Assembly: GCF_022045235.1 (NCBI RefSeq)
Contig: NW_027266266.1
Span: 5,084,001 to 5,148,000 of the forward strand
Length of the DNA: 64,000 bases
Direction of reading: 5' to 3'
Source of the DNA: Haliotis cracherodii
Lineage: Eukaryota
This document shows positions 28,513-58,252 of this stretch, piece by piece (position 1 is the first letter of the stretch; the number at the start of each line of letters is the position of its first letter). A program made the translations under genes and the position numbers. The notes below the pieces were generated by a model that had not been told where the DNA came from, searched no databases, and worked only from the letters and a program-made list of their open reading frames with translations.

Positions 28513-31500
28513 ATGAGGGTGACGGCAACACTGGCAGTCATGTTGGGGCTTGTGTTATGCAGCTGTATGGTTCAAGGTCAAACTCGGCAACAGGTAAAGA
28601 TCTTTATGTTTCCAATAATTCGTTTTGATTTTCCAATCCTTTATCTCGGAAATTACTCTCAGGACACAACCGTCTGATTTCTCATTTTTTAAAACCTTGG
28701 AATGGAGATGTTTCCACGAGATAATTTTGCGCCAAATAAAGTAATCGTAAATCTCTGCACACAAACATGCAGCGATTACGGGGAGGAATAATACACCATC
28801 AGTACATTGCCGCGATATCGCTTCACTGCTGCTGAGGGGCGGTCGGGTAGTCTAGTGGTTAAAGCGTTCGCTCGTCACGCCGAAGACCCGGGTTCGATTC
28901 CAGACATGGGTACAATGTGTGAAGCCCATTTCTGGTGTCCCCCGCCGTGATATCGCTGGAATATTGCTAAAAGCGACGTAAAACATACTCACTCACTCAC
29001 TCACTGCTGCTGACTGAGGCGACAAACAACAACACAAAATATAAAAAGGTAGCGGAGTTTCCGAAGGACGATTGTGGCCTGATCTTAAAGTATCTCACCT
29101 AAAACATGAATGTCGAATTGTGATTGGCTGAGACCCATTCTGTCGTTTTCAATGTACCCCAATAACACATAAGATGCATTTCTTATATTTCCCGCTCGGA
29201 TTGCCGAACTGTGGTAACATACCAACCGCATTTGTATCTCGAAATGAGGATGTATTTACGAAATTTTAGAAATGAAATTATTATATAAGTTTCTTTTCTG
29301 CCATTGCTAATTTTCCAAAATGTTGAATTTTTACCGACTGCGATCATAGCATGCTTACATAAGACATATATTAGGTGTGCAGTTAGACAACTTCCTTGTC
29401 CTCTGGTTCCCCGGGTGACACAGGTTAATGTACCCTCAATGTTAATATTAGTTACTGGTGGACAACTTATAATATATGCCATTAGAATCATCTAGTCTAA
29501 TGTAACTATTGACACGATGCCTGGACATTTCTATTTTCACCACAAAGCATCCGTTGCATTGATGCTAATGTTAACATTGGAGATAAACATTTCACTAAAA
29601 CATACAGCATTCAAAATTGAGTTGATTGTGTATTTCAGCGTCGCCGAGCAAAGGTTTTAAGAAGTAGATGGTCACGTGACATCGATACAAACGTAACCGT
29701 AAAGGAAGCGGCAGCCATTTTGAAGTCCAAAGAGAGAATATTCTTCCGATCCTCTGACAGACGGCTGGCAGCTTTGAGCATCACACGATCCTACTCCTAC
29801 ATCGACTACAGCAGCGTGAGTATATACACATCCTTATTTGGAAATAACTGATCATACTCTGAGTTATATCACGGAACGTGAGCTTGATGTGAACATATCA
29901 CGGCGCGTCAGCTTCATGTGAACAGTATTTCAGTTGTATCACGGCACGTCAGCTTCATGTGAACAGTATTTCAGTTAGCTTTCACGTCAGCTTGATGTGT
30001 GGTGTAAACAGTATTTCAGTTATACCACAGCACGTCAGCTTGACGTGTGATGTGAACAGTATTTCAGTTAGCTTTCACGTCAGCTTGATGTGTGGTGTAA
30101 ACAGTATTTCAGTTATACCAAGGCACGGCAAGTCAGCTTGACGGGTGATGTGAACAGCATTTCAGTTATACCACTGCACGTCAGCTTGACGTGTGATGTG
30201 AACAGCATTTCAGTTATATTACGGCACGTCAGCTTGATGTGTGATGTGAACAGTATTTCAGTTATATTACGGCACGTCAGCTTGATGTGTGATGTGAACA
30301 GTATATCAGTTATATTACGGCACGTCAGCTTGATGTGTGGTGTGAACAGTATTTCAGCTATATTACGGCACGTCAGCTTGACGTGTGATGTGAACAGTAT
30401 TCCATTTATATCACAGTGCATCAGCTTGATGTGAAATTTTGACCTCTCTTTAGTCTGTACAAAGTTAGATCCTTACAATAACGGATATTACAGTATCCTA
30501 ATCGGTACAACGCTTGTTCCGAACGATGAATAGCTCGATATATTTGCGATGTTACCAATGATTTCGGCCTACCGATCTTCATGTACTTTGCCCTCTACCA
30601 ACACCCGAATAATTCAAAGGGCTACAATATCCACCACGAGTGAGCCATATTTAAAACAGTAACATTATGCGAAGCTAAAAGAAAATCTCTTTCTGTTCCC
30701 AAGTCATGACACTGAGTTTCGTGATATTAACTGCAGCTGAGTATTCTCTACATGTATTTACTTCTCTCTAACACGATTGTCTGTTTATGTTACATTTGCT
30801 CGTTCTTACACAGGTCCTAGTAATACCCATTAGGACAGAACAAGGGAATATCTACCTGTTAAGTCCCACCTTCTTGAGTCCACGGCTACTGGATGGCGTG
30901 GTACCCCTTTTGGCAGGAACGCTGATTGCACCCAAACGTTGCTCGTGTTTCTCCTCAAACGTTGGTAACATGGAAATGACACTTCTATTTGCTACAGGAC
31001 ATGGTGGTGACTAAAGCCTACGTGTCAGGGAGCCGGAAGTGCATCGTCCTACCAGGAAATATCACCGAGGACTTCAATACCACCATGACTGACATACTGG
31101 CCAGGAAGGTTAGTTGTGTGTTGAGGGGCGGGGTGAGGGATGGGGTGTGGGGGTGAGGATGGGGGTGGTGGTAGATGTTGGGTCTTTGGGCATTTCTAGC
31201 GATTATTTGTTTTATGAGCTTTTAATCTTATCGTCCATAGCAACGTGGTTTAGACATGTTGTTTTCTTATTTGAAAGCCGGATTGGTAAACAAACAAACA
31301 CTTATTTATATAAATACCGCTCCTGGAAAACAGATCATCATAAGTACCTGTGGGGGTCGTTAAAAGAGCCCACACATTCGTGAAAAGTATGGCTATGTCG
31401 CGTCAGTCTGTATACAACACAGCCCTGACAAGACAAACCTGTGTCTTAAAAAATAAGAAGACACTAATGCAACGATGAAACACAACACGCAAAATCACAG

Positions 31501-38587: not shown

Positions 38588-41500
38588 ATGAATTCTCTTC
38601 TTCTTGCTACAGCTCTTGCTTGCCTGGGTCATGTTCTTTTGGCTCAAACAAGTCCTGCGGTGAGTTAATATATTTTCGTAATTGGATATTATGTAAAACA
38701 TGTTCCATTGCATGATTGACAGCAAACATTTAAGTTCAATTATTAGAATGTTATGAAACTCAAACTATTTATATGCCAGAAAATACTGTAATTATATAAA
38801 ACCTGGTCTTGTATCTGACCTCGGTGTTATATCTGACCACGGTGGACCTACAAGGACAATTAATGAAAGTTTCATCGGCATGTGCGTTACGGGTCACTGG
38901 ATGTTCTAGTCCATCACTTGATTGTCACGATTGTTTACATGCAACCGTTGCATGGCAGTAGCATCACTGTTGTGTTAGTCGGGCAACAAGCACAATTGCT
39001 GTAACATGCACTGTGTGTGGCGGGTGCTTCCAGTATGGAAGGACATCAAGGACTTTCAATCATATAAATTTCACCGCGAATCTGTTTCAGCGTATAATCA
39101 AGATTGGTTATTCTCTGCCATTGACGTTTTGTACGTACAGTAAACTACGGTTATAACGAACACGCTTATAACGAACTAACGGATATAACGAACTAACTTT
39201 TTAGTCCCGACTATATGCTGTAGTTATGCTGTATATATGCTTATAACGAATTACGGTCAAAACGAACTAAAATTAGTAGTCCCTTTGAGTTCGTTACAAT
39301 CGTAGTTTACTGTATATCCGTCCCTTGTGGGGGCACGGGTGGCCCAGTTGTCAAAGGCAACGCAATTCGCTGTGTTGAGTTGCGTTCCTTGACCACGCCA
39401 GAAACCTATGATTCTGGGTTCGGTTCCCGATTCGCCCCGATTATGTATCTAGGTTTGTCAGCACAATACCCGTGCTCGTGGGTTTCACCAACGTGGAAAC
39501 CTGCATCACTTCGGACTTTTCTCCCACATGAAGTTAATGGGCGTGATATAATTGGAATACGGTTCAAGGCGGCGTTAAGCCTCACTCACTCACTCACTCA
39601 CTCACGCAACGAGGTCAGAACATCTAAGCCATCGTTATCTTGGCGTTGAAAGAAACCTGGCGTTTAAAATAATTATATAACTACATATTTTCATTTTTTG
39701 CCTATTTTAGGCGAGCATAAAGGCGTCATGGACTCGGGTCGTGACTCCAACCGTAACAGCAAAGGAAAGAGCCGTTATAAACGACGCTGCCAAGACCATC
39801 AAATTCGTCGCTCCATCCAGGGCTCTGGCATCTGTTGGTCTGAAAAGCAACGCCGAGTATATTGAATACAACACGGTACGTGATTCGGGTATACTATGAG
39901 ATGTAAACAAAAGCGAATGTGTTTCATCGGAAAAGGATTCCTTATTGTTTAATGTCTATTTGATATGGACCTATGTAGTAGACTGTGCTATATTATTTTC
40001 AGACGTACATATCACGGATGTTGATCTCAGTAAGCGACAACGTATCATAAACACACACTATTTACATCTTACTGGGAAGGTGATCGATAACTGGACTGCT
40101 CGTTACTTTCAGGAAATGTTTGCTGTGAAACTTTTCGATCGGCCAGTTAAGACTTGTTTCATTTTCAACGGTACCAACGTGCTTGATACATTCTCCGCCA
40201 CAAGTGCTGACTTGCAAGCCCGAGTTGTAAGTTGTCAGTCATTACCGGTTCTGTTTGTTTTTTCTCAAATATTCAACTGGCAAGAATGATACATGTAACA
40301 AATGTCATATTTGGGATAAGACTTTCTTAGTTAAGTACAGATTCCTTTTGGGTTGAGTCCCGTCCGGGACTCGAACCCACACCGCCAGAGTGAGGCAACT
40401 AATCGCCAGCACACAGAGTCAGCGATCTAACCCACTCAGCCACCGAGGCCTCTACAAAATTGAAACTGGTAGTCTAGATCACGTACTTTGTGTACCCCTC
40501 TGACAAGTGTATGATACATACAAGAATGGTACATTTTACAAATATAAACATGATTTTATGTCGGGATTATTGTGGGATTCTATTGGCACGCCCGCCCACC
40601 CGCACACACTCGCTGTTTGAATCCAAGCTTGTTCTAAATGAAAATAAAATGATAATTGTAGAGAGAATAACCGTGACATATTTTTTAATTATAGCAAGTG
40701 AATCCAGGGATGGAGAAGCAGTTTATGACCCTGACAACGCCAATGGACGCAGCAAGTCAGGCCACCTTGAACACGGCCAATCCATTCATCGCAACAGAAT
40801 GTGCAGCCACAACCTACATTGACACGACAGAGTTGTCTGCAGGTGAAGCAATGTTGCAATGTGTCTTGTCTGCGTGAACAATCGCCCCAACTCAATTTAT
40901 ATCCTTATAATTAAGTTGTCGTTGTGTGCATTGATATTCCTGCATTCTGATTAACTGAATTGGTCACGTGTTATTGCATTCATTTCCCGATGAACGTAAA
41001 CAATTAAGCCACGCCCACCGAGGCGCACTACTTTTTTTACTGCGGAATCCCGGGGAATCCCAATATTACAGTTGAGGGAATTTCCTTTCTGCTCACGTGT
41101 ATCGTCATGCACAGGACATTTAGCGACTTTCATGCATATTCATTGTCCAAACTACCCTTTGAAACCGAAGGCCGAGAATGAATGAAACAGCAAACGAACA
41201 GGCTCGCTCGCCTGTTTTTTTTCCGATCGCCCCGTTCAACTTTCATGTCTTCGGGTTTCATTTCTGACCAGCCTTTTTTTCCTACTGTGTTTTACCGTAA
41301 TCAGGGAAGTAATGTTTGAATCTGGCGGTAACTGACCATGTTATTTGAAACAGCCGCCTTCTCCCGGACATATTTCTTCCGGTTCTTTACAGTCTGACTG
41401 TTGCAGTTCTTTTCGCCTCTTGCCATAATTGACAGGTCCAATGAACATAGATTTGATCCTACTTTCCGTTGATTGGCTACTGACTGTGTAGGCGTGTCAA

Positions 41501-44500
41501 GTTGTGTGCATAAATTAAACGATCCCCTGATTCATGTCACGCCAAAGTGTATATTCCTACACCTGGAATGTTTATCAATCTCGTCATTTTTGTCTGTTTT
41601 TATATATACAACTGTTTTAGTTAAACTATTGTACATAAAACATGTTATACGTTGTCGAATTTAATTTTAAGCATTGACTGTATTTATTTCGGTTCATTGA
41701 GGTATGAATCGAAAAACCGATGTGCGGATTCTTACAAATGTTTGCACATCGGTTTTTCGATTCATACCTCAATGAACCGAAAATAAAACAGTCAATCCTT
41801 AAATGATTATTCTTCGGCTATTAATTTTACAGTTGGTGTCTAAAGTATAACCTTTAAAAACGTAGAGAGTGCTCCATCATCCCGAGGCAAGAGAGTTAAC
41901 TTTACTTTAAAGTCCAGTTTCCACACTTGCCGAACTAGACTGGTATTATGGAGTTATATTTTGGCTGGACTATAAAGTCTGTGCATAGTCCAATCATAAT
42001 TGCGAAATGAAATCGATATCCGGTTCGTAAACTGCCGTGCAGATTTCGATCGATTGTAGGATTTGCAAAGCATGTGTACTGCCAACTCGGCGTCAACAGA
42101 TATTTCCCGAATCCTTTCAAACTTTTAATCAAGGTTCTTTCGTGATTTGATCCACTTCGCGAAGTAAGACCCGTTTTATCACTTTTAATCTTGATTTTCG
42201 ATAGGATCGTCTTGACTGGGCGCCTCCATTTTGTTTGAAGCAAATGCAAGTGATATGCGAGGTGGAATTTGGTTGGTCAGTTGTGGGGTTATCGGAGGGA
42301 AATAACTCGTAATAGCCACTGGTGGCGCTAGGTTCGGCAAGGATGGAAACTGGACTTTAAGAGTCAGTTGACGCAGTTGCCTCGGGAAGATGGGGGTAAC
42401 TTAATATTTCTAAATTGTGAGACACATTATTTTCTAGTAATAGTTGCATGATAAGAATAAACGAAGTTGGACTAGGTAGTGAAGTATGACAGTAGATGGT
42501 ATGACTGCCAACGATCTTGAAGGACCATATAGGTAAGATGGGAAATTTCAAAGTTGACGTTTTTGGATCAGTAGTGCGTAATACCGCCAAGATTTGTCAA
42601 AAATTCATTCAATCGACGAGGCATTCTGCCCCAACGTCTCCCAATGGCAATTTGGAGGTCTGTCTCATTCCTTTGCAACCCTTCGCCAAGTTCAGCTGAC
42701 ATGATCACCAGTTGACGTTGATGCGAACGTCTCCCTATCGAGTCCTAGACGTGTTCAGTGGGGGGCCATCTGGGCTCATTACTGGACATGGCATTCTAGG
42801 GATGTTGTGCTGCTGGAGGTGAGCCTTGACGATTCGTGCACGGTGGGCATGGGCGTTGACGTCCTGAAAGACGAAACGTCGACCCACACGTCTTGCAAAC
42901 TGGACAACAAATGGTTTTAGTATATTTTCCTGATAGTACTGTCCAGTGACAATTGCTTGCACGATATGAAGTGGGGTTCGCTCATTGAATGGTGATGCAA
43001 CCCCTGCCAAGTGCAAAGTGAATCGGGACTCATTTGAAAGCATGACACGTGAACAGCGACGTTTACCCAAGTTTCGACTGTCTGTACACCGTTGCGTCTG
43101 TAGGCAATATGACGATTTGTAAGGGGCGACACAACACGTGGTCATCGAGCATGGAGACGAGCTGTATGTAGACGATTTCTAATCGTGTGACCCGTAATTC
43201 GTACTCGAGTAGCGTGAAGAACGTTTGCGGAAATTTGATTCACCGTTCGAGCTCGATTTCGAAGAGCCTGGACCGCCTCTGTGGCCTGGTGTTAGAGCGT
43301 CCGCCCGGAGAGCCTGGACCGCCTCTGTGGCCTGGTGTAAGAGCGTCCGCCCGGAGAGCCTGGACCGCCTCTGTGGCCTGGTGTTAGAGCGTCCGCCCGG
43401 AGAGCCTGGACCGCCTCTGTGGCCTGGTGTTAGAACGTCCGCCCGGAGAGCCTGGACCGCCTCTGTGGCCTGGTGTTAGAACGTCCGCCCGGAGAGCCTG
43501 GACCGCCTCTGTGGCCTGGTGTTAGAACGTCCGCCAGGAGAGCCTGGACCGCCTCTGTGGCCTGGTGTTAGAACGTCCGCCCGGAGAGCCTGGACCGCCT
43601 CTGTGGCCTGGTGTTAGAACGTCCGCCCGGAGAGCCTGGACCGCCTCTGTGGCCTGGTGTTAGAACGTCCGCCCGGAGAGCCTGGACCGCTTCTGTGGCC
43701 TGGTGTTAGATTTTTTTTATAATAACCATTTGATAATATTAAGCTTAAGTACATGTATAAGGCAAACGATGTGGTCTTATGGTTACGTCTTGGTCTTAAT
43801 AGATGCAACCCGTGAAGATCCGGGGTAGAATAGTTCTTCAGCAACCCAAGCTTGCCATAAAAGGCGACTAACGTGATCGGGTGTCAGGCTCGCTGACTTG
43901 GTTGATGCATGTCATTGTATCCCAATTGCGTAAATCAATGCTCATGATATCAATCACTGTATTGTCTGGTCCAGACTCGATTATTTACAGACCGCCGTCA
44001 TATAGCTGGAATATTGCTGAGTACGGCATTAAACAACAAACAAACAAGCATTTCTTAATAGATGCCTTTGTATATTATTTGATGACTTGATGCCTTTTTA
44101 TTTCAAACTGTATTGAATACGTGCATACTATTTGATGAAGACAATTTCAATTGGAAGATAGTGTTTAGGACTCAATGTGATCATATTAGTAATGGTCTTG
44201 AATGCATGTATCCTACATGCTGATAATGATATTGACTACATGCATACTACATTAAAGTATGGTTATAACGAAGTCAAAGGGACTACTAATTTTAGTTCGT
44301 TATAACCGTAGTTCGTTATAAGCATATATACAGCATAACTAAAGCAAATAGTTGGGACTAAAAAGTAAGTTCGTTATATCCGTCAGTTCGTTATAAGCGT
44401 GTTCGTTATAACCGTAGTTTACTGTATTTGCATACGAAAATGTTTTTATAATGGTGTTCCAGGGTCCACTGCTCCCGCTAACAGTGAAGTTGTGACGTTC

Positions 44501-44539
44501 CCGACGCTGTGGGGCAAACTAACGCTGTACATCCTGTAG
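38588..44539 (+). CDS. Secreted BRICHOS-like protein, paralog B, 191 aa. Exons: 38588-38659, 39711-39875, 40113-40226, 40695-40842, 44463-44539
   Basis: GT-AG introns, phases 0,0,0,1, 576 nt open frame. MNSLLLATALACLGHVLLAQTSPA / ASIKASWTRVV...YIEYNT / EMFAVKLFDRPVKTCFIF...LQARV / QVNPG...NPFIATECAATTYIDTTELSA / GSTAPANSEVVTFPTLWGKLTLYIL-stop. Aligns exon by exon with paralogs A and C. Confidence 0.85.
39138..39312. mobile_element. Tc1/mariner-type MITE; inverted second copy at 44250-44424
   Basis: TA-CAGTAAACTACG...CGTAGTTTACTG-TA ends; internal TTATAACGAAC repeats. Confidence 0.85.
40320..40452 (-). mobile_element. tRNA-derived SINE, fifth family (single partial copy)
   Basis: Minus strand GGTGGCTGAGTGGGTTAG A box and GGTTCGAGTCCC B box with no closing acceptor stem. 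Confidence 0.55.
41550..41802. repeat. Foldback (palindromic) dispersed repeat; homologous segment at 2470-2650
   Basis: 41667-41802 is a hairpin with ~60-bp arms; 41550-41720 matches 2470-2643. Similar short foldbacks at 20131-20251 and 57235-57289. Confidence 0.75.
41874..42393. mobile_element. MITE with ~65-bp imperfect TIRs; second copy from ~63770 to the window end
   Basis: CCATCATCCCGAGGCAA...AGTCCAGTTTCCAC-ACTTGCCGAAC mirrored at 42330-42393; the left end recurs at 63781-64000. Confidence 0.75.
42600..43260 (-). mobile_element. Highly degenerate Tc1-family fragment
   Basis: VMLSNESRF, FQDVNAHAHRARIV, MSPD...PLN in ORF 42735-43145. Confidence 0.75.
43264..43710 (+). repeat. Tandem array, 46-bp unit x ~9.7, derived from the SINE-D head
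   Basis: GAGCCTGGACCGCCTCTGTGGCCTGGTGTTAGA(G/A)CGTCCGCCCGGA, near-identical units. Confidence 0.95.
43808..44047 (+). mobile_element. SINE-like family A, full-length copy in intron 4 of paralog B
   Basis: Matches the 1435-1677 copy end to end. Confidence 0.85.
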
Positions 44540-45362: not shown

Positions 45363-48300
45363 TCAGTGGAAAATTTCCATACATGATCTTATATAACTTG
45401 CCAGTTTTAATAGAGTTGGCTTATAAGTAATGGACATCAAATGAGAGAATTTTACGGCAGAAGGATACATACAGTAGTATTGAGGCAAAAACTTGTTTCT
45501 AATTTCTGAGAGTTTTGGACATTCTAATAAAAAGTGCATTTCATCACATATAAAATTTTTACACAATGTACATTTTCTTTCCTCTCTCACAATATTATAC
45601 CATCTTCCTGTTTCAATGGGTAATCTATGATTTGCTGTTCTAAAACGAGCAAGAGAGATGCGTAAGGTGATTGGTAGTTCTAGTAAATAAGGTTCTAGAG
45701 ATGGTAACTCTTTAAACATGTTATAATAGTAACCTTTAGATGAATTTTCCTTTGATTCTCGCCATCTTTGCAGAAAATTATCAATGAGAACATGTTTCAC
45801 ATTTTGTTTCAACCATGCGACACTAATAAAGGTTTGAGACAGCCAAATGTAATTAAAGCCTATATTTTGAAGAATGCATTTTACTTCTTTTAATAGTGGG
45901 AAATGGTAATCTGGATTTGCAATGGACATTTGAAACATAAGTTTATATACTATACTAGAAAGGCTAGTTTGTGATGATGTTAGCTTGCACCAATATGAAA
46001 TCATTCTTATCTTAATGAAAATGCTGAGAGGATACCTCCCTAGTTCACCATATACCATGTAATCGGGTGTTGACTGTTTTAACTTGAGAATATATTTACA
46101 AAATTTAAGATGTACACGTTCAATGACAACAGTATTTTCAAAACCCCACACCTCAGATCCATATAACAATACTGGCTGAACAAGTTGATCAAATAATTTC
46201 AGTTGACAGTCAATAGGAATTTCTAATATTCTAATTTTACGAAATACAGCGTACATTGCTCTAGATGCCTGATCTGTCAGTCTCTTTAGTGCCTTACAGA
46301 ATCTACCAGTGTTTGTAAATAAAATACCAAGGTAAACATATTCTTTAACAACATGAAGAAACGAGCCATTTAACATAAACTTGAAGACTCTATTTGTGGA
46401 GCGCTTGGCAAAAATAACTACTTTCGTTTTGCCAACATTGACTTTAAGTTTCCAGATAGTACAATATTCTTCAAATATAGTGAGACACTTTCTTAAATCT
46501 TCTGGGCTTTCGGCCATTAAAACAGTATCGTCGGCATACAAAATGAGAAAAAGTTTTATGTACAGTTCAAGTGAATCTATTAAAAGGTTATTTACATGAT
46601 GCAGTCCTTCAAAGTCATTTTCAGATAAAAATTGTTCAAGGTCATTAAGGTACAAAGCAAACAGGAAAGGTGACAAATTTTCACCTTGTCTTACACCAAT
46701 TTGACATGGGAAGAAACCTGACACCTTGTTATTGTGTGTAACACAAGATTTGATATTTTGATATATATTATATATGACATTAAAACATTTTCCTTTGATA
46801 TTAGACTTTATCATTTTTGACCACAGACCACACCTCCATACTGTATCGAAAGCTTTGCTAAAATCGACGAAAACACAATACAACTTCTTATTAAGGTTTC
46901 TATAGATATCAATGAGAGCTTTAAGAATAAACATATTGTCAATTGTTGAGTATTTTTTTCTAAATCCTGCTTGCGCTTCGCTTATCAGATTAGTCTGAAC
47001 TGAGTAAGCTTGTAAACGATTATTCAATAGTGTAGTGAACAATTTACCTAAACAGCTTAGGATAGAAATACCTCTGTAATTGTCTGGGTCAGCTTGGTTT
47101 CCTTTGTTTTTGTAGATTGGTTTTATTTTGCCAACAAGCCAAGCTTCAGGTAAAACCCCAGTGTCAAAAACGAGGTTAAAAAGCCTTACGTAAACCGGCA
47201 TCATAACATGAATAGAGCTTTTAATGTACTCATTGTAAATACCATCCAACCCACAAGCCTTATTGTTCTTCAATGCACGGACAGCTGACATAATTTCTTC
47301 TTCTGTAATCCTACAATCTAAGATATCATCATGATTATCGTAATTTGTGTTATTGGCAAAAACATCGTCATTATCATCAGAACTTTGATTAAGATCTTTA
47401 AAAAATTGAAAAAAATTGTCAATACTGATTTTTTTCTGCTGTTTTCTTTGGTTCAAATGATTTTAAAATTTCCCAAAAATTCTTAGGGTTACTATCCTTA
47501 CATTCCCTCAGTTGTTGGGACACATTTGTCTATGTCTTAAATGCCTTCTTTAGGGTTTTACTATAAGCTCTACTAGCTGAAATGTACATAGCTTTGCTAT
47601 TACTGTCTTTAGTCCTTCCATATATACGTTTACGCTTGTGGTAAAATCTACGTGATGATTTACATTTTTCATCAAACCAGGGTTTATGCTTGTGCTTATG
47701 TACAGAATGTCTAGAATTTCTTACAGTACCTGGAGTAGTTTCAGCCGCAGTAACCAGCGTCTGAGAGGGTTTATTTACAATTTGGTTAATGTCATTTCGC
47801 TCTATTTGGTCTTTACATGCATCTAATTCTGTACACTGATGGGTAATGGCAACCTTATCGATATTACATAAAAATGTTTCACTTTTATCAGGAACCCATC
47901 TTTTTACAACTTTATGTACATGTACATCCTTGTCATCATCTATAACTGGAGATAGTTGTTGTGCTGTACAATCTAACGTTAACGATAAGCCACAGTGTAC
48001 ATCGGACGAGATCGGATCAAACTCCTGTACATGTACCTCAAAATCTATTGATAATGGGAATGTTTCTGCTGATGCAATACAATAATCGACAACACTGGCA
48101 TTTCTGCATGTCAGTTTACCAATACCCTTGTCTTTGCCTAATCTTCCATTCACAATATACAGCCCGTTATTTTTACATAAATCCAGGAGTTTATACCCGT
48201 TACAGTTTGTTTCAGTATCCATTGATATTCTATCTAAATTTACACCGGTGTCAACTAGAAGTTGTACATTTGAAAACAATAATTCCTCGTCAATAATATC

Positions 48301-48800
48301 ATTGTCACATAAATATTCGTCCAAAATGATAAAATCCGGAAGATTTTTAGTACGAAAATTCATATCACCAACAATACACATGTACTGTGAGCAGTTTGAC
48401 ATACGAATGATATCATTTTCTAGTGTTGTAAATATTTCCGGTGAATGAAATCTACTTTGCTCTGGTGGTATATACACAGTTCCTAGGATAAGGTCATCGT
48501 TAACATGCAGGAAATCACTTGGTATCTTACACCATAAAACAATATCATGCATCTTTTCGATGACGCTGACCTTGTCAAATAGTGTCTCTTTGATGGCTAC
48601 AATGATCCCGCCAGATACACGTGTGTTCAGTGCGTTAGTTCCGTTATTCATATGAACTGAGAATCCTGGGATTTTCACAGCATCTAAATCACACGTTTTA
48701 GTTTCAGTCTGACACAGTATATCGTATCTGGACACATCGTTCACAAAATCGGGGTTCAACAGCTTTGTCCTAATCCCACACACATTAAGAGACAGTATCT
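45363..48800 (-). pseudogene. LINE ORF2 (AP endonuclease, reverse transcriptase, C-terminal CCHC), interrupted in the linker
   Basis: APE motifs LSLNVCG, QTETK, VYIPP, GDMN, SVVDY, SDVH; RT motifs NYRGIS, QAGFR, VDFSKAFD, GVRQGENLSP, LYADD, YLG; C-terminal CTLC...EMHFLLECP. An in-frame TAG at 47530-47532 and a frameshift near 47458 split the ORF. Confidence 0.9.
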
Positions 48801-48870
48801 TAAGTTTCTCGTGGGAAGTTACGTTTTCACTGTTAGGCGACTCACGGGTTTGCTGACCTCCGTTATTCTC

Positions 48871-49812
48871 CTACCGCGGCCTGTTTTCTCCCGTGTCCTC
48901 AGTCCTGGCCATCTTGTTGGGTTGTCTGTTGTCTGACCGACCGAAGGCACTCGCGTATGATCTCCTGCTGGGGGGAGGGTCTCGTGGGGTGAGATCTATA
49001 AACGGGTCGTCTCCTGGGTACACACGTCTCCCGTCTATATACAGTCTGTCTACTGTGAGGTTAGACTTCAAACCACGCCTCCTTGCTTCCTTGAAAATGG
49101 GGAGTAGATATCTCCGTCTCTGCACAATCTCTTGAGGAAACTGTTCACTAACACCGAATTGCGTTTCTCTCAGCTGTCTTGTGTTAGTCAGGATTTCCCA
49201 CCGTTCGTCTGGATTTGCAAATTTTGCCACTATAGTACGTGGTCTGTTAGATAAGTGAGGGCCAATCCTATGTACACGTAAGAGGTGAATGTCTGTGTCA
49301 CACTTCATTTCTTTCTTTAAGAAACCTTGAATTACCTCTTTAGGTTCTTCTCCAGGCATTTCCGGGATCCCGTGAAAGAGTAAATTATCTCTCATAGAGC
49401 GTGTTTTCAGGTCAATGACATATTCTTTCAGGTCTCGCTGTTCCTGGTATATGGAGTCTATGTCATAAAACACGTCTTCTACATCTCTCGACAACCTGTC
49501 CCGATCATCGGTACTCTGTTCTGTCAGCTCCCGTACCTGTTGTTTCAGCTTTTTGTTTTCTGATGCAGTCTCTCTCACACAGGCTTCAAGCTTATCAACG
49601 CGAAGTGTTGTCTCTATCATTGTAATGTCGAGAGATGTCAGCTTATTGTCAATCATAGTTAATTTACTGTCAATGCTATCAACACACTGCATCCTCTGGT
49701 TTATGGAATGAACCATGGTAGTCAAGTGCCTCATTTGATCAAATAAGGTTTTAATCCATTCTGCGTTGTCAACACTGGACAACATGGCCTGGTTGAAAAT
49801 CCGTGTTGGCAT
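48871..49812 (-). CDS. LINE ORF1 protein (coiled coil plus L1-type RRM/CTD)
   Basis: Heptad-rich N-terminal half, then RSMRDNLLFHGIPE, VHRIG, PRTIVAKF, VSEQFP, LTVDRLYIDG motifs typical of L1-type ORF1. Confidence 0.85.
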   Translation of the reverse strand: MPTRIFNQAMLSSVDNAEWIKTLFDQMRHLTTMVHSINQRMQCVDSIDSKLTMIDNKLTSLDITMIETTLRVDKLEACVRETASENKKLKQQVRELTEQSTDDRDRLSRDVEDVFYDIDSIYQEQRDLKEYVIDLKTRSMRDNLLFHGIPEMPGEEPKEVIQGFLKKEMKCDTDIHLLRVHRIGPHLSNRPRTIVAKFANPDERWEILTNTRQLRETQFGVSEQFPQEIVQRRRYLLPIFKEARRRGLKSNLTVDRLYIDGRRVYPGDDPFIDLTPRDPPPSRRSYASAFGRSDNRQPNKMARTEDTGENRPR

Positions 49813-50254
49813 TCTGATGTTGTGAATGATTTTGGACGAAATGCGCCTCCATCACTGCACATCAATAATAAGATTTTCGCATATATTTATACAATGTCTG
49901 AATGTAGACTTACAGTTTGTACATGTCAATCTTGTTCGTGTCTCAATTTCTCGGTTAGCTATCAGGGCTATCAGAGCTCTCGAATAAACACGTCCCCATG
50001 CTACGAACCCAAGCTGTGTATCAAACTTAAGATGTTTTATAACCTCTGTTTGAGTACAAATCTCAACTGAGTACGAACTTGAGCATGAGCATGAAACTGA
50101 GTTGAGCACGAATTGTTTTTATTACCTCGGGGCCAGATCTTCAACGTGTCCGTGCTTTACCTTGGCTAAGCCATCGCTCAATGTCTTTGGATATCTTGAA
50201 TTTGATTGGTCAATCAGCGTTATCATGTCAAAGTAACACTCTTCTACGTGAATC

Positions 50255-50850
50255 CTATATGATGTAGATACATATAATGTAGATATAAATAATGTAGATA
50301 TACATAATTTAGATACACATAACTCTAGATACACATAATGTAGAAACATATATTATAGATACACATAATTGAGATACACATAATTAAGATACACATAATT
50401 AAGATATACATAATGTAGATACACATAATGTAGATACACATAATGTAAATACATAATTATAGATACATATAATGTATATATACGTAATGTAGAAATGAAT
50501 AATGTAGATACACATAATGTAGGTACACATAATGTAGATACACCTAATTTAGAGACATATAATGTAGATGCACATAATGTTGTGAACAATACTTCTCAGA
50601 AAGGAATATCAGTAGTGAGCCAGCACAACTTCACATTTATCGTTGGGCCATGTTCCCCTGTATGGATAATTTCTACCGATAAGGATAAAGTACGGATTAT
50701 TTCTAATGATATGGATAAGTATAAGATAATTTCTACCGATAAGGATAACGTATGGGTGATTTCTACCTCTATGGACCATTTCTAATGATATGGATAAGTA
50801 TGGATCATTTCTACCGATATGGATAAGTATGGATCATTTCTTCCGATGAC
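50255..50850. repeat. Two adjacent minisatellites (15-bp GATACACATAATGTA; longer GATATGGATAAGTATGGATCATTTCTACC-type unit)
   Basis: Tandem units at 50255-50580 and 50660-50850. Confidence 0.85.
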
Positions 50851-51689
50851 GGAATCCAATTTTGTTCAAAATCACACTCAAATACACTCGGCACAGGGAT
50901 AAGTTACAACATTTAGGTGGCAGCCTGAAGGTGAAGAGTACACCATTTCCAAGGCATACCGCCCAGGGCGCTCTCACAATTAGAAATAGGGGGCTCTTAT
51001 AAGAATATTATTCTGGCGGGAAAATACAGAGTTGAAAGATCGTCAATTTCGTGGTTTATGCTGACAGCTTGAATTTTTTATATACGACAGATATATTTTT
51101 CCAGAATTTAATTGCCCATAATTATGGGTGCAAATAACACACGAGTGCGTATTATACACGAATAAATAAGTCCATAAATTGTGTACATTGATCAATCGGA
51201 AGGGGTGCTAATAGGGATTGTTCACTAGCCAATATATCAGCAAATATCGCTGTGGGCGGTTATTAGAGCGGGGCGTCAAATACGATAATAGTGTCAAAGT
51301 TGTGTTTCCTATTTTAATTATCTTTACACCAACATAACATCAATGCACGTAAAACTTAAAGGGAAATGAAAGTAGTTCTGAGTTTATGTGCTTCTAAAAA
51401 CACATAATAAAACAAATAATACATAATAACGGATATATTTTAGTTTAGTTTTAGAAATCTTTCGATATGACTAGCTCTTTAAACCACTGGATTGGAAATT
51501 AAATTTATCATGTGTGATGCCAAGACCATTCTTCTGTGACATGTGAAGACGTTTGATGACAGCTCTACTGATAACTGAAACCAGTTTCAATACATAGCCC
51601 AAGCATAATCACCACATGCACCAGCTTTGACCAATCCATCCCCATGTCGCCCAACCTCACTGTATACAACGTGATAACAAAGCTTCATT

Positions 51690-53490
51690 TAATCCGTACA
51701 GAGAGATATATTGCGGGGTCCAGCAAATGTACCACCAAATCCATGTCTCAAAAATAAGCCATTACACTGAACTCAATAAAAAAAGTTTTTTTTATATTCA
51801 CAAAAAGTATTTGAGTCAAGTGGAACCAATGCATTGTGGAATCCCATAAACTCACAAGATTTGCTGGACCACTTTTGCAATATCAGCACAAAACAGGTTC
51901 AATTCTGTGAAACCGTTTGATTCTTCAACTGCGTCCACCTCTAATCCCACTCGACAAACTAAAGGGAAATCTTTCTTCCTTAACCCATGGGGCATTTAGA
52001 AATAGTTCTTTTAATTCGACGCTAACACGATATACGGCTTCTCCATTGGACGAGAGGTCGGTCACATGACACATAAGTGTATGAACGGCACAATTTGGCG
52101 TTCATACGTCTATTTTTTACAAGACCGTGTTCTTGAAATGACGTAAACACTGACGGACTACTTACACATTCCTTGGGGAACCCCGAGGAAGTCCCTAGCT
52201 CAAATACACACAGAAGCGATCTTTCTGACCATTTGGACCCTTTAGTCTAGAACTCAGCGTTTTAATATTCATTGAGAAACGTCAGATGGTTTAAATGCAT
52301 GATTCGTTCTATGAATTTACCTTAGTGTCTATTTGACACATTTTAATCACTTTTCAATGATCGGCCCATTTGTTTAATGATGACTAAAGCATGTAACCGC
52401 CACAGGTTCATAAACCACTCGAAATCTCTTCCGTCACGTTTATCGTGTCGGCCACTTTGACATCTTGTACTTGATGTACATGTATTACGTATTGCATTGT
52501 CATTCTGACTGATTTACTGACGTAGCTCTTGACAGACCTTTCTCATCAAATGGTGATATTATTTGAATAATGTGTTGTGTCAAATGTTTCTGAAGAGCAA
52601 TGTGTGCATACATCCGCTAATGTCACCTCTCTCTTTGGGGAACTATTTTATTCCTCGATACAACTGGTTGTTGTATGGCTGTCAGTGTAAACATGAAGTC
52701 ACACGCACTAAATAAAATTGTGCATAGATCTAGGCCTGCATCCTTTGAGGTAACAAAATGTGATAAAAAAATGATAAGAATTGACTTTCACTTTGTGTGA
52801 GTCATTTCCTAACTAAAAGTCGTGACCAAAGATACAGTTGCAGATCTATCTTCAGAGGTTCAGGACAGTTTTTCAAAATTGAAAGCAAATGCCATCTGAA
52901 GTTTACTGAGAAAACAATATGTGATATGCAGGATTTCCTCATAAATAAAATCTATCTATGTATCTATGCATATCTAGGTAAGACATTTAAGCTAAAAGTA
53001 GGCATCCCCATGGACACCAAGGGTACTCCCCTTCCTGCTGATCTGTTATTTTCTCTATGCTATGAATCGGCATTTCTGCTCTGATTGGCAAAGTTAAACC
53101 AAGGTGATTAGGCCAAGAAGTTTAACTTAAGCTGCAAGTATAACGATGATCTGATATCGTTCAGTTACTTTCAAGGTGCCAATTCCCTTCCACTGATTTA
53201 CCAACCTGAACTAGAAATAAAGGAGACCAGTGAGACGGCATCGTGTTTCATATTTAGATCTATGCTAATAGATTGAGGATGATAAAAATCTATCCACAAG
53301 GCTGTATGACGAGAGGGATTACCCCAACTTTCCAACGGTCAACTTTCCCTTTATGTCAAAGAGTATTCGACCATCTCTTTTGTGGTGCAATCGATCATGC
53401 TCTTTCTACTAAGATTTCAAAGAGCGTCATACTACTCTCGATCAAAAGTTGTTTGATCAAGGTTACAAGGTTTTCTTCACTAGAGTGAGT
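51690..53490 (+). mobile_element. Penelope-like retroelement RT remnants (51690-51960 and 52800-53490)
   Basis: RYIAGSSKCTTKSMSQK, VGIPMDTKGTPLPADLLF, YNDDLI, IYQPELEIKET, STRLYDER, FDQGYK; many frameshifts. Confidence 0.7.
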
Positions 53491-53797
53491 AGTAGCAAGA
53501 ATATTCAATCCTGGGCAAGCAGTCAAACACTTTCATTTGTTTTGTTGTCTGGTTTAAAATCAAAGTATTGGAGTTACAAGTTTGTTGTTATGGTTGATGC
53601 ATTACTCAGTCACTCAGTCACCCATCTCACGCCTCTCTTATTCCTCTAACTGCCTTTGTATTATATATACTTTGTCAAATGTAAAACAAATTGGCTCAGG
53701 CACTGCCTCGTATCACATAAAAGTACAAAAGAAATACACAGAGCTGAGCGATCACATTACTTTATTCTGAAGACATACACGATGCTGTGGACAGCGT

Positions 53798-56700
53798 TTA
53801 AGGAGGGGTGGCAGTGGTGGTTGTCACAAGACCAGTTGACCGAAGGATGTAGAGATGCACAGTCCCCCACGAGGTGAAAAAAGTGAACTTATCACTTGCA
53901 GCTGGGGGAGGGGCTCCTGAAAAGTGGACATCATCATCAACATTCATCATTATCATTAAACAGATTCATCAACAACAACATCGTCATCAACAATCATCAT
54001 TATCATTGAACATCTTCATCAACAACATCCTAATTAACGATCATCATTATCATTAAACATATCCATCAACAACAGCAACATCATCACCAACAATCATTAT
54101 AGTCAATAAACACCACCATCAGTAACAATCATCATTATCATTAAACACCAATAAAAGTGAATAAAAGTCAGTAAATCGACATAATAAGCCCCTACAATAA
54201 TCCACATCATCATCTTTTCAAGTATTCATCAACATCATAAAGAATCAGCAGCAGCCACAAATTCATCTGCAAGAATCTCAACCATCACACGTGAATATCT
54301 TGACGCACTTACAAAATCGATGCTTCACAGGAAAATAAAGTATACTAAATAAATAAGACAAAACACTATTACCTGCGGCCATTTCGGTGGTCGCCACGTA
54401 GTTGTTTCTTCTGTCGGAACACTTCTTTTGAATGAAGGGATGTTTCAAATCGAAAGCACTTTGACTGGCTGCGTCCATGATAGCTCCATCTGTCTGGTAG
54501 CTTTTCTCCACAGTCGTGTTTAACAATTTCTGAAATTATGAAAGTAGTAAAGATTATATACCACAATAATGTTCGTTAAGACAGTTCACTTATCTGTCTT
54601 CAGAAGCAAGGCTTAAAGGTATCTGCTGTAGATAACATGTTGTGACGAACACAACATTATAAACACAACTTTTTAAGTCAGGAAATACTTGACAGTGTGC
54701 GTTACAGTTAACGCCGCACTATATTTCAGCTACCGTATTGGACGTAATAAGCGCCCCGCTCTAATAAGCGCCCAAGGCGATATTTGCTAATATATGACAA
54801 GTGAACAATCCCAATTAGCATCCCTTCCGATTGATCAATGTATACAAGACTTATTTACTCGTGTATAATACGCCCTCGTGTGTTATATGCACCCTTAATT
54901 ATGGGCAATTACATTCTGGAAAAATATATCTGTCGTATATAAACAGTTCAGACTGTCAGCATAAACCACGAAATTTATCTTTTAACTCTGTTTTTTTCAC
55001 CAAAATAATATTCTAATGAGAGCCCCAATTTCTAATTTTGAGAGCGCCCTGGGCGCTTACTACGTCGAATACGGTATACAACAGAGGCCTGAAAATAAAC
55101 TAGACCAGACAATACGAAGACCCACAATGAAACCTTGACATTGAACATCACCACCCGTTCCATCACGAGTGAGTGAGTGAGTGAGTGAGTGAGTTATGTG
55201 TAACATATTTCAGATGTGGGGGCCTTCTTTCTGAAGCATAAAAGAACATCGAACTAAATCATTTGTTGACATGTTTGCAAAAACAAGTGACTAATGTTTC
55301 ACCCTCACACCTATTTTATTTTAAACGCAGCCCCTTTGCCAAACCGCTGCTACTCATCCCCACCATCTGCCCCACCCAAACACTTTTCCACAAAGCTGTA
55401 TCCGAGTGTGGCTATTACTTACAAGCGCCTGCAAAGCGGTGCTTGTTGCACTGAAGGTACCGATAAGGGCAGGGGTGACGTCGAGAAGGAAGCACGTTCT
55501 ACCAACATCCCCTCGAAGCTTTGTTGCGACCATAGCCTGAAAATAAATAACAAACAGAAGATGTTTACCTACAGATTAGGGATTGGAAGAGACGTGTCAC
55601 ATTCAATGAGTGAACATATGGTTGTGACCGTGACAGTATATTCCAGCAGCATTAATGATCGAGTGAAACGATACACAACGAAGCAAATAACAGTTAATCT
55701 TCACTGGTTGGCTCATACGACAAGAATTGAACTGGGGATATTCTTCACGAAATCAGGACACGCCGCGCCCTCTGATCCAAATTCAGAATAGCAAATAATT
55801 TTTTTCTTTCAGTGATCTACTAAACGTATTGTCAGTTCGTGGTGTTATACTGCAGTGTAATTTATTGTTAATCAGTGTTGTATTATATTGTTTCCGCTGC
55901 GATTCAGCAGAAGTTCATAGCATTATGTTTTGACAATAATTGGTTGTCTGGAATGTGACACTATTTAATGTAAGCAGTGGTGTGGAAGTTACTATATTTA
56001 GACGCTTTTTGGAGTTACAACATCTGGGGTAATCTAGCATAGAACAGAACCTTCCAGGAGGTTTTTAGACAATATTATGGGGCACGAGAATGTCTCTATC
56101 ATCTGACATTACATGTCATATTACATCAAGATCAGCTGTTGTCTGAAGATAGTATTTTTAGCCTGGATATCTATTTTGTAAGCTTGACCCCTGTTGCTAC
56201 TAGCCAAATATTATCATCACTGAATTTCTGCTTTCACCACCACTATTGTATTAAATGCTGCCATTGTAATTCTACTGCCATTGATCTTTGTACTGCCACT
56301 CTAATGTGTACGGCCATTGTAATAACTTTGTAGGAATTTGTATTGATTTGTAAACCTATTTAATTTTAATATACAATTGTATGTCATTTCCTTATTGTTT
56401 GTTGGTTTTACATTGAATACTTTTACGCATAGATTTCTGTGTTAGCGTATTGTTTTAATTTTGAATTCGACACATAACAGTGGAAGTAAAAAAAAAAGGA
56501 ATCAACAAAAAATGTTTTGGAAAAACGTCAAAGGCTTGATTCCCTTCCCTTACTGTTTCATATTGAAGTTTGGAATCACTTAAATGAGTTAAAAGAATCG
56601 TTGGTAAGAATACAAACAACAACAAAAACTTTTATGTATTTAATCTTATTTCACATCTTTGAATTTTTGGTAATTAAAACCAACGCCTTACACTGCTGTA

Positions 56701-58154
56701 ATCTGTGTAGGTGCGGCTCCTAGCGATGCCAGTTCCGACCAGGTCACTGCTTCTGGAGCTAAAGCTGATGCCGGAATCAGCATTCCATATGTACGCACTC
56801 TGTTTGACTTCAAGCGAGTCGCTGACTACCCGCAACCACTCCGCCCTTATGGAGCTTTTCTGAAACAAGGTTATTTTACGTAAGTGTTAGTTTACACTGT
56901 TGTCATCAGTTTATTTCTCCGAATAACCACCAACGGTGCTACAAGAGTTTATCACCCAAAACTGACTCCCACCGGAGATTGCGTTTGGGTGAGATCAAGC
57001 GATATCTACATTGTAGATATCGCTGCAATGAAATGGCATCACAATGCTTTGCAGACCATTGTGATGTCATTGGTTATCACTAATAGCTCTGGTACTGAAG
57101 CTGTTAGAAGTACTTTTTACACTTAAGACACTGCTTATTAATGTCCACAAACTGTAAAAGTTGGAAGAGTGATGTTGGATGATTAATAAAATCTCACCCT
57201 CGTGTCTTTTGATATCAAATATATCAACACTCGTTGATAAAAGTGGAAAATCGCCTCGGCAAGCCTCAGGGCTTTTTCCACTTTTATCACGCTCTCTCTC
57301 TATACAACATATACTATGTATTCAATGAGGATGAAGATAGTAACATGCTTAAATGAGTGAGTGAGTTACAATTTAACGACGCATCGGCATTATTTCAGCC
57401 ATACAGCGACCAATAAGTGATTTAGCCACTTCAACATAATGAATGTATTTAAATGTTCAATAAATCTGGACAGATGTTTCAGAGCGGATGAAAATTTAGG
57501 TGATAATGTTTCACGTAATTTACACATTTTTGGACAGATATAACAATTCTTTGGGATATAAACAGCCATACCCACAGCACTCTGTATATAGTCGTGTCTG
57601 TGACAGGCAAGCTAAACACGCCGTCACGAGGACATGCTCATGATATTAATCACTGGATTGTCTGGTCCTGACTCGATTATTTACAGACCGCCGTCATATA
57701 GCTGGAATATTGCTCAGTGCGGCGTTAAACAACAAACCAAAAAAATCCTTCAGTATACGACCGCCTCCGTGGTCTAGTGGTAGAGCGTCCGCCCAAAGAG
57801 CGGAAGGTCCGGGGTTCAATCCCCGACCGCGACTTACCAAACAACGTTAAAAAAGGATACTTGTTGTGACCCTGTCTGGCCCTCGGCATTAAATGGGCTA
57901 AACCAAGGACTGGTCGGTCAGTAAACTGTGTCTGAGCGGAGTATTCATGTTAAACTGCGGTATGGTATCTCAGTGAGCACACACACGCTATATAATTGCA
58001 ATAATCTTGGACGCGTCGTTAAACCCCATTTCACCTCACCTCCTTCTGTATACTCTGCATTATCTAGCACGCTAAGACTTACCTGTCCCGGCCACTGTGT
58101 ACAACCATTTGCCACCAGACTCACGAATACCGCGAGGCAGGGGAAGTAACTCAT
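53798..58154 (-). CDS. Secreted BRICHOS-like protein, paralog C, 209 aa. Exons: 58154-58083, 56859-56692, 55536-55423, 54529-54373, 53916-53798
   Basis: GT-AG introns, phases 0,0,0,1, 630 nt open frame. MSYFPCLAVFVSLVANGCTQWPGQ / KSSIRAEWLRVV...YTDYSS / AMVATKLRGDVGRTCFLL...LQAL / KLLNTTVEK...HPFIQKKCSDRRNNYVATTEMAA / GAPPPAASDKFTFFTSWGTVHLYILRSTGLVTTTTATPP-stop. AATAAA on the minus strand at 53761-53766, about 30 nt after the stop. Confidence 0.85.
53928..54270. repeat. Degenerate (CAT/CAA)n low-complexity tract in intron 4 of paralog C
   Basis: Direct reading. Confidence 0.8.
54733..55074. mobile_element. pogo/Tigger-like MITE; inverted partial copy at 50958-51290
   Basis: TA-CCGTATTGGACGTAATAAGCGCCC ... 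GGGCGCTTACTACGTCGAATACGG-TA. Confidence 0.85.
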
Positions 58155-58245
58155 GATGTCCAAGCGTTTTGCCAACCGGTAGATAAAATCAGAACTTCTC
58201 AAGTGGTTGTCGATGTCAGCTGATGTGACACAACATGGACTGCTC

Positions 58246-58252
58246 TTTTATA
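58246..58252 (-). promoter_or_regulatory. TATA box of paralog C
   Basis: TATAAAA on the minus strand about 90 nt upstream of the ATG at 58154. Confidence 0.5.

Follow-up and report, generated by a model that had tools for sequence, protein, structure and literature searches.

Tandem UP6 shell-protein genes of the black abalone and their probable relation to the BRICHOS fold

Introduction

The closest described relative of the genes reported here is UP6_HALAI (Swiss-Prot P86725), a shell protein of the abalone Haliotis asinina. The expressed sequence tag (EST) ML5B8 (DW986296), which encodes the same 209 residues (supplement of Marie et al. 2010, PMC2989941), was published as a complete sequence with a SignalP-positive signal peptide and 'no homology/no recognised domains', and two of its peptides, FTVFTTWGK and NYNYLATTELTAGAAPPPASDK, were identified in the shell by tandem mass spectrometry (MS/MS) (PMC2989941). 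The protein was observed at 32 kDa, against a theoretical 21 kDa, in gel band S6 of the acid-soluble matrix; it was seen in samples of prism plus nacre and was not detected in nacre alone (PMC2989941). In the prismatic layer of Haliotis laevigata, homologues occur as minor proteins (Mann et al. 2018, PMC6003135). Here we describe three genes of this UP6 family in a 64,000-nucleotide stretch of the black abalone, Haliotis cracherodii (contig NW_027266266.1, positions 5,084,001 to 5,148,000, forward strand; hereafter designated the window), and examine the probable relation of their products to the BRICHOS domain.

In the arenicin and alvinellacin precursors of polychaetes, a BRICHOS domain is followed by a C-terminal beta-hairpin, which is cationic and disulfide-bonded and is freed at a processing site. 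The BRICHOS domains of proSP-C (2YAD) and Bri2/ITM2B (8RNU) have the order of secondary-structure elements that is predicted for UP6, with an acidic residue and two Cys residues in elements that are probably equivalent; however, UP6 is soluble and secreted and not a membrane precursor of type II, has additional strands at either end, and is unmatched by the Pfam model. Gastrokine-2, identical to ovocalyxin-21 (OCX21), is a BRICHOS protein abundant in the hen eggshell matrix and a proposed chaperone (PMC3999959, PMC4666066). Like UP6, it is small and secreted, with a signal peptide and a beta-rich linker preceding the core, which in UP6 is probably of the BRICHOS type; both are found occluded in a calcium carbonate biomineral, and gastrokine-2 is the nearest neighbor of UP6 in the language-model search described below. 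Sequence similarity between the two is nevertheless undetectable, the conserved C-terminal hairpin is an addition of UP6, and the likeness of their roles is one of analogy.

Results

Three UP6-family genes in the window

The three genes, designated g1 (+), g2 (+), and g3 (−), comprise five exons each, with every intron of the GT..AG type and in phases 0, 0, 0, and 1 (Table 1). Their spliced translations agree residue for residue with the RefSeq proteins XP_071092923.1 (g1; 222 residues, from the ATG at 28471), XP_071093539.1 (g2; 191 residues), and XP_071092927.1 (g3; 209 residues). The ATG at 28513, from which an earlier note on this DNA had read g1, is the second Met, where the hydrophobic signal core begins. 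That note had proposed three intact five-exon genes with these orientations and phases, which is borne out by the RefSeq identity of all three and by spliced contigs of g3. It had also called them hidden, which is true only of a prokaryote-style track of open reading frames (ORFs): the window is eukaryotic DNA with ~40% guanine plus cytosine, in which short ORFs are scattered, and the genes are annotated in RefSeq.

Gene finding was based on translated comparison of three sub-regions, which gave four collinear similarity blocks, each flanked by AG and GT. The fifth block, the signal-peptide exon, was seen in the comparison for g1 and g3, and its copy in g2 was located by hydrophobicity and a phase-0 GTGAGT donor. 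Searches with the models themselves were made exon by exon, and the full-length analyses used database proteins identical to the spliced models. All three genes contain the shared motifs that the note had listed, namely a signal peptide, W-x-R in the first strand, Y-x-D/E-Y...K...C, P-F/Y-I/L-x-x-x-C, and the terminal segment, and the mature proteins have exactly two Cys residues. Proteins of the family are secreted, ~19–22 kDa in size, with isoelectric points (pI) of 6.6–10, and are probably N-glycosylated.

UP6_HALAI is 67% identical to the g3 protein and 65% identical to that of g4, a paralog just beyond the window (E 3e-83); it is collinear with g3 and has the same two Cys residues, hairpin, and Thr-rich tail. 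The identity of g1 and g2 with the UP6/g3 type is only 24–37%, and their membership in the family is indicated by an exon-2 profile (E 5e-24 and 2e-21, respectively) together with collinear exons. NCBI labels g2, g3, and g4 'uncharacterized protein 6-like'. Thus, the genes and the family, which the note had taken to be uncharacterized, are already known from RefSeq annotation and from a Swiss-Prot founder, present since 2010, that is a shell protein identified by MS/MS.

For transcript evidence, reads were compared with the g3 region (53700–58250; 4,551 nt), the RNA nature of runs X1–X3 being a guess. A 616-nt contig of run X1 matched exons 5, 4, 3, and 2 of g3 with 0 mismatches, at joints 53915/54372, 54529/55423, and 55535/56691; the introns skipped are exactly the three predicted, whose + strand ends read CT..AC. 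Within the stretches that they cover, a 399-nt contig of X2 and a 584-nt contig of X3 have identical joints, the latter being ~4% diverged and bearing a different organism label. A DNA run, X19, is collinear through the g3 introns. Since the spliced contigs are present and the DNA run is without them, g3 is transcribed. Mapping of transcripts, which the earlier note had called for, has thus joined exons 2-3-4-5 of g3 exactly, whereas the junction between exons 1 and 2 of g3 and every junction in g1 and g2 are based on identity with the RefSeq models. Taken together, these results leave hardly any doubt that the three are real genes of the UP6 family.

Evidence for a probable divergent BRICHOS core

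The core of UP6 is probably a very divergent BRICHOS domain of the gastrokine-like type, as the earlier note had suggested. Four indirect lines of evidence support this assignment: language-model neighbors, a fold topology with an acidic residue and two Cys residues, domain architecture, and shared intron positions.

In the ESM Atlas, the nearest large clusters to both the g3 protein and a g1-type protein (~98% identical to g1 and 28% identical to g3) were those of gastrokine-2, gastrokine-1, and other BRICHOS proteins, with PF04089 present in 91–100% of the gastrokine-2/-1 members. The scores were 0.90 (194 shared features) and 0.91 (192 shared features), and 17 of the 30 matches had this set of families in common. 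According to the calibration, such feature counts are usual for true members and rare by chance, while a score of 0.90 borders on the class 'lead only'.

AlphaFold2 models built from a 14-sequence family alignment had mean predicted local distance difference test (pLDDT) values of 81 for g3 and 77 for the g1 type, with predicted template modeling (pTM) scores of 0.77 and 0.71; apart from the signal peptide and the tail, most 10-residue blocks were at ~85–95 in both. The two models show the same topology, in which three N-terminal strands are followed by three more meander strands, a helix, a strand, a long helix, a strand, and the terminal hairpin. The BRICHOS fold is a sheet of five strands, a four-strand meander plus a last strand, that has a helix on either face. 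In structure comparison, ~90% of a BRICHOS domain was aligned at 3.1 Å with 17% identity, and both BRICHOS representatives ranked among the first 30 of 48,161 chains with either model. The architecture likewise has the BRICHOS-type order of a hydrophobic N-terminus, a beta-strand linker, the core, and then the C-terminal hairpin.

The acidic residue of the Y-x-D/E-Y strand is kept in every family member, including a distant subfamily; it is Asp in g1, g3, the paralog g5, UP6_HALAI, the single-copy protein P0005, and the distant subfamily (A-Y-D-F). Its equivalence to the BRICHOS Asp is taken from the model topology and the intron position. The two Cys residues, the sole ones of the mature protein, do not vary among 14 sequences or in the distant subfamily. 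In both models, one lies at the start of the next-but-one strand after the acidic one, and the other is at the end of helix 2, ahead of the final core strand; they presumably form one disulfide. An acidic residue and two Cys residues so placed constitute the BRICHOS arrangement. A helix 2 ending in h-x-x-x-C and followed by the last strand is common to proSP-C, Bri2, an abalone ITM2-like protein, and, as modeled, UP6.

The abalone ITM2-like gene, whose product is a type II membrane protein, also provides the comparison of introns. Its BRICHOS region has two phase-0 introns around a 37-residue exon, and two phase-0 introns flank a 37–38-residue exon in UP6. With introns marked by slashes, the ITM2-like sequence reads ...V-W-H-D-F-Q-Q / N-Y-T-A-I-V-D-H-V-R-A-S-C-Y-V-M-K-...-I-N-K-L-G / R-E-G-Y-Y-...-L-G-P-Y-I-M-R-E-C-, and the UP6 counterpart reads ...Y-T-D-Y-S-S / A-M-V-A-T-K-...-C-F-L-L-...-L-Q-A-L /. 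The acidic residue is followed by the first Cys 18 residues later in g3 and 16 residues later in the ITM2-like gene, and the ITM2-like P-Y-I-M-R-E-C corresponds to P-F-I-Q-K-K-C or P-Y-L-A-R-K-C of UP6. The intron directly upstream of the 37-residue exon of the ITM2-like gene contains a long tandem array with a 55-bp period.

Against these four lines stand the sequence-level tests and some features of the models. The PF04089 search that the earlier note had recommended gave 0 matches at E ≤ 10 (curated cut-off, 25 bits) in ten window exons, four full-length proteins, and eight exons of distant paralogs; exon-wise Pfam scans of the three genes and the distant paralogs returned chance matches only (E 0.04–0.4), and Pfam scans of the four full-length proteins returned nothing. 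In a whole-genome scan, PF04089 matched only three other loci, on contigs C67, C11, and C78, leaving the UP6 locus unmatched, and nothing relevant was found among PDB sequences with the family profile and three single proteins. The family hidden Markov model (HMM) scored the ITM2-like BRICHOS protein at −1.1 bits, which is not significant, and hhalign aligned the family profile with the same protein over 7 columns, covering P-x-I-x-x-x-C alone. Glu occupies the canonical Asp position in g2 and g4, as it does in one H. asinina paralog. Moreover, a shared 14-sequence alignment underlies both AlphaFold2 models, and the fold scores are low, with LolA/ependymin proteins tied with BRICHOS. As for occurrence in the shell, the proteomic evidence concerns only the UP6/g3 type, through its orthologues in H. 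asinina (two peptides) and H. laevigata, and not g1 or g2.

The C-terminal hairpin

The terminal hairpin is the most conserved segment of the protein, with a mean pairwise identity of 0.50 versus 0.34–0.37 for other structured parts (six representatives), and its T, G, and Y residues are invariant. In both models it is placed along with the core at a pLDDT of ~90. As the note had observed for g1–g3, the hairpin lacks Cys, carries little charge, and is not preceded by a dibasic site. The order of elements is that of the arenicin and alvinellacin precursors, but the UP6 hairpin lacks a processing site and was recovered together with the rest of the protein from the shell. An arenicin-type antimicrobial precursor is ruled out by the absence of Cys, of a net cationic hairpin, and of a processing site.

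The two shell peptides of H. asinina map to the first hairpin strand and to a segment that spans the whole Ala/Pro linker, from the last core strand up to the Lys preceding the hairpin. A processing cut exactly at this Lys is indistinguishable from trypsin cleavage, but the size of the 32 kDa band argues for the whole chain. Since peptides from the hairpin strand and the intact linker were recovered and the band has this size, the hairpin belongs to the mature shell protein. The note's suggestion that the hairpin may stay attached fits these data. Its alternative of a controlled amyloid-forming element finds no sign in them: the hairpin is retained on the mature protein, with nothing pointing to release or amyloid.

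Extent and evolution of the family

The cluster consists of at least five tandem paralogs, of which three lie inside the window. The 'cluster of three' of the earlier note is accordingly correct for the window and an effect of its borders, as g4 and g5 lie just beyond, 1–43 kb past the right end. Throughout the genome, a six-frame search with g3 exon 2 and the family profile detected at least 14 family loci, including a second, more divergent tandem subfamily (Table 1). In three loci retrieved from the latter and in the copy at 1.85 Mb of the same contig, later exons are collinear with the family HMM. This distant subfamily retains A-Y-D-F, both Cys residues, and the terminal hairpin V-T-F-L-S-I-N-G-K-V-D-I-Y-L-K-S.

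When the exon-2 profile was run with HMMER against 1.84 billion representatives, it matched four Haliotis clusters and one repeat protein, the latter judged spurious. Word-index protein searches found nothing beyond Haliotis; the one made with the family alignment was saturated at 8000 scored candidates and missed known members, so that its short list carries little weight. As far as these searches see, the family appears limited to Haliotis. The lineage-specific expansion envisaged in the note is thereby supported, the family being a lineage-restricted tandem expansion of small secreted proteins.

The ratio of nonsynonymous to synonymous substitution rates (dN/dS) is 0.21 overall for g1–g5 (0.13–0.5 per exon) and 0.61 overall for g3–g4 (0.33–0.97 per exon); both paralog pairs are under selective constraint. 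Between g3 and g4, synonymous divergence is ~1.0 in exon 2 and just 0.07–0.19 in exons 3–5, and exon 1 together with ~250 bp upstream of the start codon aligns at 73%. This pattern looks like a mosaic history with gene conversion of the 3′ half.

Coordinates and neighboring elements

Table 1 Exons of g1–g3, further family loci, and the abalone ITM2-like gene. Plain numbers are positions in the window; C3 is the contig that holds the window.
Feature	Position	Strand	Description
g1 exon 1	28471..28593	+	Start codon and signal peptide; donor GTAAAG, phase 0; in-frame ATGs at 28471 (RefSeq) and 28513
g1 exon 2	29639..29815	+	Three N-terminal strands and Y-I-D-Y strand; acceptor gtgtatttcag, donor GTGAGT; aligns with exon 2 of g2 and g3
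g1 exon 3	30998..31108	+	37 residues: strand, first conserved Cys, helix 1; size and phase-0 boundaries match the abalone ITM2-like BRICHOS exon
g1 exon 4	32372..32531	+	Strand, helix 2 with P-Y-L-A-R-K-C (second Cys), last core strand; phase 1 end
g1 exon 5	32833..32930	+	Linker, terminal beta-hairpin PLTLLTVGGSVTIYV at 32859-32903, stop; RefSeq identity
g2 exon 1	38588..38659	+	Signal peptide; hydrophobicity and phase-0 GTGAGT donor; RefSeq identity
g2 exon 2	39711..39875	+	N-terminal strands, Y-I-E-Y (Glu replaces Asp); aligned with exon 2 of g1 and g3
g2 exon 3	40113..40226	+	38 residues: first Cys, helix 1; donor GTAAG, as in RefSeq protein
g2 exon 4	40695..40842	+	P-F-I-A-T-E-C (second Cys); acceptor ttttttaattatag; phase 1 end
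g2 exon 5	44463..44539	+	Linker, hairpin VVTFPTLWGKLTLYIL at 44489-44536, stop; past 3.6 kb intron; RefSeq identity
g3 exon 1	58083..58154	−	Signal peptide; donor GTAAGT; RefSeq identity
g3 exon 2	56692..56859	−	N-terminal strands, Y-T-D-Y; RNA contigs X1, X2, and X3 cover the exon and its join to exon 3
g3 exon 3	55423..55536	−	38 residues: Cys95, helix 1; RNA-contig joints 55535/56691 and 54529/55423, not in DNA run
g3 exon 4	54373..54529	−	P-F-I-Q-K-K-C, Cys155, last core strand; joint 53915/54372 (cut +1) in X1 and X3
g3 exon 5	53798..53916	−	Ala/Pro linker, hairpin FTFFTSWGTVHLYIL at 53843-53887, Thr-rich tail, stop; transcript contig extends to 53745 (3′ untranslated region)
g4	C3:5149065-5157518	−	XP_071092928.1; intact five-exon paralog, right of window, 76% identical to g3
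g5	C3:5187407-5191296	−	XP_071092929.1; intact five-exon paralog, right of window, 94% identical to g1
Second, more divergent tandem subfamily	C3:5376224-5480515		Seven exon-2 matches; 230–330 kb away
Single copy	C3:1854336 (1.85 Mb)
Single copy	C78:20299279-20303474		Protein P0005
ITM2-like gene	C67:59596200-59606199	−	PF04089 match above cut-off

Mobile elements and repeats lie between and within the genes. A non-LTR (long terminal repeat) retrotransposon-like element is present between g2 and g3 (45363–49812, −) with three long frames of 313, 417, and 697 residues, the last of which contains a reverse transcriptase domain (PF00078, E 3e-37). Between g1 and g2, a fragment of a DDE_3 (Tc1/mariner-type) transposase was found (35268–35840, −; E 1e-16), and the 3.6 kb last intron of g2 contains a transposase-like ORF without a Pfam match (42735–43145, −). 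In g1 intron 2, a tandem repeat (29959–30434) appears on either strand as ORFs built from a recurrent VNSISVILRHVSLMCD-like unit of 16 residues. Two segments of g3 introns (54612–55219 and 57500–58107) had very high summed depth in contigs of every run, RNA-like and DNA, and are high-copy interspersed repeats; a (THSL)n-coding microsatellite is located at ~55160–55200. The runs of N in the window (5324–5477 and 26473–26702) are both outside g1–g3.

Discussion

On balance, the explanation of the whole that we favor is that the genes are UP6 paralogs with a divergent BRICHOS core and a chaperone-type role in shell formation. The earlier note's guess of a shell-matrix protein has proved right, because UP6_HALAI, by MS/MS, and its H. 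laevigata homologues were found in the shell. Its BRICHOS proposal is upheld by the language-model neighbors, topology, architecture, and introns, but not by the Pfam HMM or by the low fold scores that LolA/ependymin proteins share.

This tie raises the question of whether UP6 is instead an open half-barrel of the LolA/ependymin kind, with a long, curved sheet of antiparallel strands and a hydrophobic cavity plugged by helices. Such a protein would bring a lipid, a pigment, or a hydrophobic peptide into the shell as its hydrophobic ligand, in the manner of the ependymin-related proteins, which likewise occur in prismatic-layer samples of abalone. Ependymin-related proteins (EPDR1; abalone Sometsuke/ML1E6) and LolA/LolB are similar to UP6 in size, secretion, and glycosylation, and show a weak whole-chain fold likeness. 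The best plausible Foldseek matches of both models were EPDR1 and ependymin-related proteins (probability 0.82–0.89, ~78–85 columns, root-mean-square deviation (rmsd) 3.3–4.4 Å), and the ependymin-domain proteins ML1E6 and 6G3 occur in the same H. asinina shell proteome, the pattern of ML1E6 being likewise prism-restricted (PMC2989941). The LolA/ependymin matches had, however, E-values of 0.1–0.3 and identities of 3–10%, with about half of each target aligned at an rmsd of 4–6 Å, far from the coverage and identity obtained with the BRICHOS domain. No ependymin Pfam match was found at E ≤ 10 in four full-length family proteins, and the language-model neighbors shown were dominated by BRICHOS, with no ependymin or LolA cluster. 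Ependymins have more conserved Cys residues than the two of UP6. A LolA/ependymin fold also leaves the intron positions shared with a BRICHOS gene unexplained, and we regard it as unlikely.

A structural shell-matrix protein specific to Haliotis, with a fold of its own and a direct, non-chaperone interaction with mineral or chitin in the prismatic layer, would accommodate the failure of sequence methods to tie UP6 to a known family, the finding of the family in Haliotis alone, and the role in prism growth or orientation suggested in the original paper (PMC2989941). The BRICHOS/LolA likeness would then reflect a common alpha/beta arrangement. Such a reading is quite unlikely, as two paralogs of 28% identity each reach gastrokine/BRICHOS clusters with more than 190 shared features apiece, and both BRICHOS representatives rank so high for both models. 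Moreover, UP6 is neither acidic nor repetitive like typical mineral binders, its pI being as given above and its predicted form globular. The remaining alternative takes the hairpin as a BRICHOS client that is released, or that switches to a controlled amyloid in mucus, adhesive, or shell. Established BRICHOS biology, with a beta-prone segment in each precursor, speaks in its favor, as do the alternating hydrophobic beta-hairpin pattern and the conservation of the segment (0.50 versus ~0.35). It is very improbable, given that no processing site lies ahead of the hairpin, that the hairpin is modeled confidently with the core, that hairpin and intact-linker peptides came from a shell protein whose 32 kDa band has the size of the glycosylated whole protein, and that no data indicate fibrils.

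For UP6 with a BRICHOS core, the following mechanism may be proposed. By orthology with UP6_HALAI, the g3 type at least would reach the shell as a secretion of the mantle and become occluded in its outer, prismatic part. The predicted core, from the end of exon 2 to exon 4, would run in order through four meander strands, helix 1, one strand, helix 2, and a final strand, one of its two Cys residues opening the fourth strand and the other closing helix 2; two N-terminal strands and the C-terminal hairpin, predicted as confidently as the core, would flank it. The protein could act as an ATP-independent holdase of the BRICHOS type in the secretory pathway and the extrapallial space, where it would prevent aggregation of beta-prone or hydrophobic matrix proteins ahead of assembly, and afterwards become trapped in the mineral of the prismatic layer alongside its clients. 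A chaperone role of the UP6 proteins is a tentative assignment, drawn by analogy. Doubtful is the further proposal that UP6 proteins are BRICHOS chaperones recruited to the mollusc shell independently of gastrokine-2/OCX21 in the eggshell, with their own beta-hairpin 'client' permanently docked.

Within the literature searched, what is new is the proposed fold, the extent and arrangement of the expansion, and the connection with the BRICHOS protein of the eggshell. No paper was found in the published literature that ties BRICHOS to a mollusc shell protein, and UP6 is not mentioned in a 2026 abalone genome paper.

Should the BRICHOS link fail, an ordinary, annotated, lineage-specific gene family is left. 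UP6 has been listed since 2010 in abalone shell proteomes without homology or domain, and a BRICHOS fold would give it a testable function as an extracellular holdase. Such a fold would also extend the BRICHOS family to a form missed by current family models and would tie the mollusc shell to the avian eggshell via one chaperone class, while a BRICHOS domain with a retained, conserved hairpin would be a handy natural model of a domain holding a beta-prone segment. Should the docked-client proposal be true, the abalone family of at least 14 copies would represent a natural, stable BRICHOS–client complex and would offer a route to how aggregation-prone matrix proteins stay soluble before biomineral assembly.

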